Shown piece by piece: positions 10,680-12,382 of a stretch of DNA of 64,000 bases; within the stretch, counting starts at the first letter, position 1, and each line of letters starts with the position of its first letter. A model generated the notes under the pieces. That model made no database searches. It had not been told where the DNA came from and worked only from the letters and a program-made list of their open reading frames with translations. This stretch comes from Sminthopsis crassicaudata. Its lineage: Eukaryota. Both the position numbers and the translations under genes were made by a program. The stretch lies in NCBI RefSeq assembly GCF_048593235.1, contig NC_133619.1, positions 651,846,558-651,910,557 of the forward strand, given 5' to 3'.

Positions 10680-11227
10680 GACCCGACCCGGCTGGGGGGG
10701 AGGGGCCCGCATTCAGCAAGGTGGAGGCCTCGGGGGCAGCCCTGCCTCCGCGCCTAGCGCTGGCGTGCCGGGTGGCGCGGCGGCCGAGAGCGGAAAGGGT
10801 TCGGGGAGCGTGTCCCAGGAAGTGGAGCTCCCGGGCCCATTCTGTGGATCAGGAAACTGAGGCGCGCAGAGGAGCTGGGCAAGACCCGGACGTAACCCAC
10901 CGCCCCACGGCACGCGGAATTCCGAAACCTCCCCACACCCCGCCCCTCCACTAGGCCCTTCGCGTTACCTAGTTCTGGGCTGGGGGAGTCGGCACCGAGA
11001 GTCCTTCCTTTCCGCTGGGCCGCCTCCTCTCGCCCCCTCCGGCTCAGCTGATTCCAATAGGTCAAATTCCCAACCCGCTGGCACAGCCCGATGGACGAAT
11101 GATATGTAAATGTGCCCCGCCTCTGGCTCGGCGCGCGTAAGCCTAGGGACTCCGCCGGAGGAGTCCCCAAAAAGTTTGGGGGGGAAAAGTTCCGAGACTC
11201 CACCCCTTGGTCACAACGGCTTTGGGA

Positions 11228-11309
11228 AACTACAGTTCCCTTCCGTCCTTGCGCGCCGAGAAGTTGGTTCCTCGAAGTGGGGGCCCTAGTGCTTGCTGGG
11301 ACTTGTAGT
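11228..11309. promoter_or_regulatory. Oppositely oriented ZNF143/SBS-like motifs upstream of IRF3 (bidirectional-promoter signature)
   Basis: AACTACAGTTCCC at 11228-11240 (+) and GCTGGGACTTGTAGT at 11295-11309 (ACTACAAGTCCCAGC on -). Confidence 0.6.
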
Positions 11310-11859
11310 GTTTTCTCAGATGCCTCGACGGGGGACACTCCTCCCCGACTCGTACCTTCTCCTTCCAAGACCTAGGCTTGCAGCGTTGCACCTCTTGGGT
11401 CCGAGGCGGGCACTCGGCGCCTAGAACCCTTTCCACGCGCCTTTCCGGATTCGGACCCAGGAGGAAGTGGGAGCAGCGGGGGTTGGACGCTCTTGGCATC
11501 TCCCGCCAGTCTTGCCCTGGGTCGCCCATGTTTTTGCAGCCCGCGGGATCTCTTTCCGGGTCCCTCCCCGTTCCCTTCTGTCTCTCTCCAGGGGTCTGCT
11601 GTCCGTCTGTTCTTCGGGTCTCCGTTCCTCTCCCCCCCATCCCGAGCCCCGCTTTCTTTTTGTCCCCGCCTATGTCTCCAGGTTGCTGCCTACGTCTTGG
11701 GCCCCTCTGTCGTTCTCCATGTTTTTAGGCTCCTCGGCCTCTCGGCCTCCTTTGGAGACCCTCTCTCTAGCTGCCCCCAACTCTGCTGGACATCGGTTTT
11801 CCGAGGTGGAGATGAGCGGCCCGGGAGAACGGCCCGACCCCCGGACTCAGAAACCCCTG

Positions 11860-12382
11860 CGGGCCGCTGATTGGCCTGGGCGGGACCAATGGGCGGGACA
11901 AGTGCCTGACTCGGGGCTGACTGGCAGGGGGCGTATCTTGGACGGAGTCCCGGCTGTCCGGAGGCTTGGAGCACTACCGCCTCCTACTGTCCGGTCGAAC
12001 CCAACGGGTAGTCTCGTTTTCTGGATCGCTCCCACTCCGCCGCCTTGGGCGGCTTCACGCCAATCAGAGAGGCTAAGGGAACGAAACGCGAGGGAGGACA
12101 TGCGCAGTACCGCGGACTCGCCAATGAGCGCATCAGCGCGGCGGGGCGGAGCAACGGAGAGATGGATAGCTCTGTCTGCGCGGGGTCCGCTGGGAAAGGG
12201 GCGAGAGGGCGGGGGCTCATCTTACGTATAACCAATGACGACGCGAAATATCAAGATGGGCGGGTGAGTCGTTCAATAAGCGTGCACGAGAGGTGGTACC
12301 CGCGGCGAGCAGGGGGCGGTGCGCCCGCTAAAAGGCGGCCCCGGGGGAGCCGCGGGCGGGGGGCGAGTTGGGGGGAAAGAAG

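Follow-up and report, generated by a model that had tools for sequence, protein, structure and literature searches.

No BCL2L12 in the ancestral IRF3-PRMT1 slot of any marsupial checked

BCL2L12, a regulator of caspases and p53, is absent from its slot between IRF3 and PRMT1 in all marsupials checked, and its removal is an old event that took place before the living marsupial orders split. The analysis covers a 64-kb stretch of genomic DNA from the dunnart Sminthopsis crassicaudata (the window, to which all coordinates given without a locus name refer) together with the corresponding loci of other marsupials and of outgroup species. Our joint reading, to which we assign a probability of about 65%, is that a deletion of ~7 kb removed BCL2L12 in the marsupial stem lineage, that the gene was probably lost altogether, and that the remaining interval now serves as promoter and leader sequence.

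The gene order in the window is RRAS exon 1 (−), SCAF1 (+), IRF3 (−), PRMT1 (+), and CPT1C (+). Between the start codons of IRF3 (10679-10677, −) and PRMT1 (12383, +) lie 1,703 bases with zero N, as the sequence-only reading had described with its 1.7 kb of gap-free sequence; the sole N run of the 64-kb window is located at 24589-24729. The first coding exon of IRF3 (exon 2, 10517-10691, −) was placed by translation, its edges being taken from RNA joints and loose contig ends, and shares 86.6% identity with the IRF3 mRNA contig of a possum. Intron 1 (10692-10968, −) spans 277 nt. Its joint 10691>10969, which reads CT..AC on the plus strand and GT..AG on the minus strand, occurs in the runs X5, X7, and X10 and defines 10969, the left limit chosen by the sequence-only reading, as the splice-donor edge of a non-coding exon 1. 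In its minimal form, this exon extends from 10969 to 11117 (−), i.e., from the donor edge to the equivalent of the start of the possum mRNA contig at ~11117. On the opposite side, the coding part of PRMT1 exon 1 (12383-12421, +) is followed by a splice donor after 12421 and is orthologous to platypus PRMT1 exon 1. Protein searches for IRF3 and PRMT1 were seeded with single stop-free stretches of the window (9811-10533, −, and 14268-15200, +, respectively). With the IRF3 stretch, IRF3 proteins of nine marsupial species were retrieved, and both this search and the alignment of the interval identify antechinus and devil as the closest matches of the dunnart window.

A compact interval of this kind could be an assembly artefact in which a segment bearing BCL2L12 was collapsed or omitted. 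GC content is very high here (62-72%), and assemblies often drop sequence of this type. However, de novo assembly of an independent run (X1) gives an unspliced contig that crosses 10500-12300 in one unbroken piece, with 2 SNPs and a 7-base indel, and thus nothing was omitted from the assembly there. Moreover, the RNA contigs are collinear with the window, the interval is collinear in the independent assemblies of four species, and the opossum gene calls agree. We therefore regard an artefact as extremely improbable. The sequence variants seen in the runs comprise G>C at 10736 and C>T at 10751 in IRF3 intron 1 (X1 and X5), a 7-base deletion at 10740 in the same intron (X1), and further SNPs at 11092, 11484, 11665, and 11824 in other runs.

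The position of BCL2L12 between IRF3 and PRMT1 is the ancestral state for amniotes and for mammals, since the gene occupies this slot in platypus, tortoise, human, and alligator. The platypus locus (L006) contains SCAF1 (+), IRF3 (−, 2720-9568), BCL2L12 (+, 10001-17323, 7.3 kb, encoding 322 aa), and PRMT1 (+, from 18286). Here, the outer start codons of IRF3 and PRMT1 are 8.7 kb apart, and the flanks outside BCL2L12 add up to 432 + 963 = 1,395 bp. In the tortoise Chelonoidis abingdonii (L003), a 250-aa gene directly upstream of PRMT1 contains a BCL2L12 exon that reads ...EDPEFYARVARKL...KEQVIQRLVALLEEQAGVINEE. The exons for the C-terminal half cannot be read in this locus, which has a 2.8-kb N gap at L003:4594-7361. 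For human and alligator, the gene order IRF3-BCL2L12-PRMT1 has been described (PMC5608299, PMC12220609), and human IRF3 and BCL2L12 share a common promoter region (PMC12256795).

The compact arrangement recurs in the other marsupials. IRF3 and PRMT1 are separated by 1.71 kb in antechinus (L001) and by 1.70 kb in koala (L002), and the devil locus (L004) is likewise arranged. The intervals of dunnart, antechinus, devil, and koala align end to end over 1,702-1,710 bases with a mean column identity of 82%. In opossum, where the comparison uses gene calls only, the two genes are 1.63 kb apart with nothing called between them; neither is any gene called between IRF3 and PRMT1 in antechinus, koala, or devil. 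As koala belongs to Diprotodontia and opossum to Didelphimorphia, the event is older than the divergence of the living marsupial orders. The sequence-only reading had framed the loss or translocation as a matter of dasyurids, with relevance to their apoptosis and p53 biology. This framing is not supported, because the compact interval is also seen in the DNA of koala and in the gene calls of opossum, and the event has no special link to dasyurid biology. The one point in favor of a loss specific to dasyurids is the dasyurid origin of the window; against the equally compact intervals of koala and opossum, such a loss has next to no probability.

Some gene models of these loci deserve comment. 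The PRMT1 models of antechinus and koala comprise 372 aa, and those of devil (L004:4353-8541) and opossum comprise 445 aa and 408 aa, respectively, with an N-terminus that runs past the conserved MAAAEA start into the promoter. These long N-termini are probably annotation artefacts. A “PRMT1-like” gene of Dromiciops gliroides (L007:10001-11299) was rejected as the PRMT1 of the IRF3 locus, as it is an intronless copy elsewhere in the genome. It encodes 432 aa in one unbroken 1,299-nt stretch within the range of a TXD17-like thioredoxin-domain gene and looks like an intact processed PRMT1 retrocopy. In antechinus, a 330-aa gene call without Pfam domains is placed between SCAF1 and RRAS (L001:19031-20125, corresponding to about 1000-2700 of the window). 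It was rejected as a displaced BCL2L12, as it consists of low-complexity GC-rich ORFs without a profile match, and probably represents a spurious gene model from the 5′ region of SCAF1.

No recognizable BCL2L12 coding sequence is left in the marsupial interval, as judged from searches at the protein and DNA levels. A profile was built from 81 members of the BCL2L12 family, with platypus left out, and searched against six-frame pieces of the loci. In platypus, this profile detects four exons in the correct order, namely the BH2 exon (E 3e-29) and exons with E values of 6e-5, 4e-4, and 0.06, which represent the central helix (..RLVALLEEQA..INQ..) and the N-terminal LRED..VL.AFL motif. Across 138 kb of marsupial DNA (the dunnart window and the antechinus, devil, and koala loci), it detects nothing; the best hit (E 0.7) is low-complexity sequence of SCAF1. 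A profile that includes platypus, searched against 243 ORF pieces of the four marsupial intervals, gives a best E value of 6.8. Default tblastn of the four intervals with the platypus, seal, camel, rat, turtle, lizard, and alligator proteins yields a best E value of 0.3, and no match recurs at orthologous positions in sense orientation. A fuzzy scan for the LRED... and BH2 WIQAHGGW motifs finds neither in the dunnart interval. In the window as a whole, BH2-like motifs (W[ILV]Q..GGW) with 3 mismatches are limited to 12670-12693 in PRMT1 intron 1 and 59088-59111, neither of them supported by the profile. The earlier statement that the interval holds no ORF, N-terminal motif, or WIQAHGGW-like motif of BCL2L12 is thus upheld by fuzzy scan, profile, and tblastn alike. 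Further, start codons, profile, and comparative loci support the proposal that IRF3 stands head-to-head with PRMT1 and that BCL2L12 is missing from its ancestral slot.

In the dunnart-platypus DNA alignment, significant similarity is confined to IRF3 exon 2 and to the PRMT1 core promoter plus exon 1, where dunnart 12313-12446 aligns to L006:18203-18348 with 76% identity (E 2e-20). A 19-nt match between 11253-11271 and L006:9929-9947, which in platypus precedes the BCL2L12 ATG by ~55 bp, has an E value of 0.18; as a DNA anchor, it is suggestive, not significant.

A highly diverged and compact BCL2L12 might nevertheless persist within the 1.7 kb. The dunnart interval contains a plus-strand ORF (11467-12231) of 254 aa from ATG/GTG, or 268 aa from stop to stop, in a stretch that is transcribed. 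This ORF has no match to Pfam or to the BCL2L12 family profile, and it is not kept in antechinus, devil, and koala: The longest stop-free stretches in BCL2L12 sense orientation are 167, 159, and 108 aa in these three marsupials compared to 268 aa in dunnart, demonstrating that there is no conserved ORF, and alignment indels are not multiples of three. In addition, splice joints are absent from the stretch, and its right half coincides with the conserved promoter of PRMT1. We consider the persistence of such a gene very unlikely. Two candidate relics of BCL2L12 exon 1 were likewise rejected. The ATG at 11321 (MPRRGTLLPD...) corresponds to ACG in antechinus and to ATA in koala. The ATG at 11814 (MSGPGERPDP...) is kept in four marsupials and resembles platypus MAGSGRPLGP..., but its ...AADW is encoded by a CCAAT box. 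Profile, tblastn, and blastn searches return nothing for either candidate.

If BCL2L12 is missing from its slot, an intact marsupial copy could reside elsewhere, either missed by annotation or concealed within a 50%-identity protein cluster. We addressed the family at the protein level. A word search with the tortoise BCL2L12 exon retrieved two proteins, including a turtle-type C-terminal fragment (P0135) that ends ...VPWLQQQGGWESIAGQDEMFELLD. This fragment matches Pfam PF15661 (CF222, the C6orf222 family) with 31.7 bits at a cut-off of 27 bits and, weakly, PF00452 (Bcl-2). Bird BCL2L14 proteins are among its weaker HMMER matches. Judged from these similarities, BCL2L12, BCL2L14, and C6orf222 may have a domain in common, as the matches suggest. 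Searched with HMMER against 1.84 billion protein representatives, P0135 has 208 family matches. The named matches include fish (elephant shark, sawfish, bichir, gar, eel, coelacanth, and lungfish) and tetrapods (caecilian, newt, frog, lizards, turtles, alligator, platypus, rat, seal, and camel); a hagfish protein was matched as well.

Among the best 150 of the 208 matches, there is no marsupial-like BCL2L12 representative, in a library clustered at 50% identity, where a marsupial protein that shares 50% identity or more with a placental or platypus representative could go unseen within its cluster. The mammal-like representatives among these 150 either belong to the platypus cluster or are 60-94% identical to seal and thus of placental type, and all of the latter contain WIQAHGGW, intact or frameshifted. 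Some of the placental-type proteins derived from Logan may be human. A copy that moved is in line with the local relocation of bcl2l12 known in the green anole (PMC5608299), with the concealment of cluster members in a library of representatives, and with the extent of the DNA searched, which was 64 kb in dunnart and 22-30 kb each in antechinus, devil, and koala. On the other hand, at least nine marsupial species are represented by RefSeq entries in the protein collection, which also includes marsupial RNA-assembly proteins (L005), and still no marsupial-like representative appears among the best 150 of the 208. Platypus and placental BCL2L12 share ~50% identity over ~65% of their length and fall into separate clusters, platypus clustering alone; a marsupial ortholog would therefore probably form its own representative. 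On balance, we regard a moved copy as unlikely, though with an appreciable residual chance. From the absence in the protein databases, complete loss of BCL2L12 from marsupials is the likely outcome.

The interval that remains in marsupials has the character of a promoter region. The promoter motifs reported by the sequence-only reading are found: An opposed pair of ZNF143-type motifs (ACTACA..TCCC) is located at 11229-11240 (+) and 11298-11309 (−), followed by CCAAT boxes. The ZNF143-type motif ACTACANNTCCC has 4 matches in the 64-kb window, compared to 0.13 expected by chance. The pair (11229-11309) is the best-conserved block of the central interval, with an identity of 0.83 between dunnart and koala and 0.93 among three dasyurids, and each of the other marsupials has one perfect copy and one with a single mismatch. 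Two further perfect ACTACANNTCCC motifs occur at 18063-18074 (−), in a GC-rich stretch between PRMT1 and CPT1C, and at 39233-39244 (+). To the right, CCAAT boxes at 11870 (inverted), 11886, 12060, 12121, and 12232 are interspersed with eight GGGCGG boxes, the CCAAT and GC boxes being spread over 11866 to 12360. The leftmost part of this series, an inverted and direct CCAAT cluster with two GGGCGGGAC boxes (11866-11902), marks the right-hand edge of the well-covered RNA. The PRMT1 CpG-island promoter (11950-12382, +) contains the CCAAT boxes at 12060, 12121, and 12232 and a TATA-like GCTAAAAGG at ~12328; its observed/expected CpG ratio is 0.94-1.17, and its dunnart-koala identity 0.67-0.92.

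In the four-species alignment, the best-conserved parts of the marsupial interval are 10791-10849, 11249-11306, and the segment from ~11784 through the PRMT1 ATG. A pyrimidine-rich stretch (11517-11735) has a dunnart-koala identity of 0.18-0.47, many indels, and no profile match and, judged from the alignment, is apparently under no constraint. Rfam gave no match. A separate conserved block lies in IRF3 intron 1 (~10791-10870), with a dunnart-koala identity of 0.80 over 10791-10849. It reads ...CCCAGGAAGTGGAG..GGGCCCATTCTGTGGATCAGGAAACTGAGGC, contains GGAA-core motifs, and is strongly kept in dasyurids and koala. The block may regulate IRF3 from within its intron.

Most of the IRF3-PRMT1 “gap” is transcribed, as seen from contigs that carry no strand information. 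Three of the four runs (X5, X7, and X10) are RNA, as demonstrated by the IRF3 intron-1 joint. In these, a transcribed stretch that is continuous with spliced IRF3 mRNA begins at 10969 and reaches 11853 (X5), 11960 (X7), or 12184 (X10). In X10, one contig of 2,574 nt extends leftward from 12184 to 10969, is spliced to exon 2, and continues through the remaining IRF3 mRNA. In X7, a 1,167-nt contig links exon 2 to 10969-11960, and its depth of 39.5 equals that of the two branches downstream of exon 2 together (21.1 spliced and 17.9 unspliced). In X5, depth is 34.8 over 10969-11853 compared to 94 at the exon 1-2 joint. Right of ~11850-11960, RNA depth drops to ~3.4. The three RNA runs show neither loose contig ends nor internal splice joints within 10969-12184, and AATAAA/ATTAAA is absent from both strands of the transcribed stretch. 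In the X7 sample, the unspliced continuation into IRF3 intron 2 (10500-10546 and leftward) has a depth of 17.9 compared to 21.1 for spliced exon 2-3, which suggests substantial retention of this intron.

Two readings of the transcribed stretch compete, as the RNA contigs carry neither strand information nor true 5′ ends and overlapping transcripts merge in assembly. We lean slightly toward minus-strand IRF3 transcripts with dispersed starts at ~11850-12180 and a first exon of 0.9-1.2 kb, a reading favored by the variable right ends and the lack of a poly(A) signal. The alternative is unspliced plus-strand RNA from the old BCL2L12-side promoter that overlaps IRF3 exon 1. The start of the possum IRF3 mRNA contig at the equivalent of ~11117 indicates that a proximal start site also exists, at least in possum. 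Bidirectional promoters have divergent start sites less than ~1 kb apart within a shared CpG island. Here, the IRF3-linked contigs, strandless and with uncertain 5′ ends, end 0.2-0.5 kb from the PRMT1 ATG, and CpG island, CCAAT, and GC boxes are present.

These observations lead to the following proposal for the history of the locus. The removal of BCL2L12 would date to the stem lineage of living marsupials, later than their divergence from placentals and earlier than the separation of opossums from the Australian orders. The most likely cause would be a ~7-kb deletion that took essentially the entire BCL2L12 transcription unit. The platypus flanks of 1,395 bp are close in size to the ~1,703 bp of the marsupial interval, and a deletion of the whole unit would be expected to leave an interval of such a size. 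We infer this deletion from the missing gene and from how much sequence is left between its neighbors; pseudogene remnants were not found. What was left over, ~1.7 kb, would consist of the IRF3-side promoter region with the ZNF143-type sites, the pyrimidine-rich spacer, and the PRMT1 CpG-island promoter, and would act as promoter and 5′ leader sequence. IRF3 transcripts would start as far right as ~11850-12180, beside the PRMT1 promoter, and with such starts IRF3 and PRMT1 would behave as a head-to-head pair. In its full extent, namely that all marsupials have been without BCL2L12 for more than ~80 million years and that IRF3 was rewired to PRMT1-side starts via a ~1-kb leader containing the old ZNF143-site promoter, this scenario is tentative, and we would not yet bet on it.

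Work on BCL2L12 in placentals concerns its part in glioblastoma, in the control of p53, in the inhibition of caspases, and in the survival of immune cells. If the gene is absent from all marsupials, these represent a natural knockout, and results on mouse or human BCL2L12 would not be transferable to work on dunnart, opossum, or the devil facial tumour. As the event is not dasyurid-specific, it says nothing particular about devil tumour biology. The loss would also set the antiviral transcription factor IRF3 against the strong housekeeping promoter of PRMT1, altering its regulatory setting. The surprise is limited, since the classical mouse Irf3 knockout allele is recorded as Bcl2l12/Irf3 tm1Ttg and this strain has been bred and used as a live line (PMC10547207). 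We found no report on marsupial BCL2L12 in the searchable literature. Its loss in marsupials would thus be a fresh instance of a familiar type of event, with a bearing on IRF3 regulation and as a natural knockout.

The marsupial neighborhood is that of human, mouse, alligator, and platypus, with RRAS, SCAF1, and IRF3 on one side, PRMT1 and CPT1C on the other, and all orientations kept. The PRMT1 core promoter is conserved between marsupials and the IRF3-BCL2L12-PRMT1 neighborhood of other vertebrates. Marsupials differ from platypus in the distance between the outer start codons (1.7 kb compared to 8.7 kb), in having no BCL2L12 exon, and in that PRMT1 has become the cross-promoter partner of IRF3. 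The IRF3/BCL2L12/PRMT1 junction is also altered in the green anole and in birds, where MYBPC2 adjoins IRF3 (PMC5608299, PMC12220609), and has thus changed more than once among vertebrates. In contrast to these lineages, nothing took the place of BCL2L12 in marsupials; its neighbors were brought together, and no BCL2L12 is found nearby. The marsupial case is like the lineage-specific deletion losses of other mammalian genes, in which an ancestral syntenic gene is gone from every sampled member of a clade while its flanks are intact. Unlike in gradual pseudogene decay, decayed exon remnants are lacking, and the locus consequently resembles the product of a clean deletion or excision.
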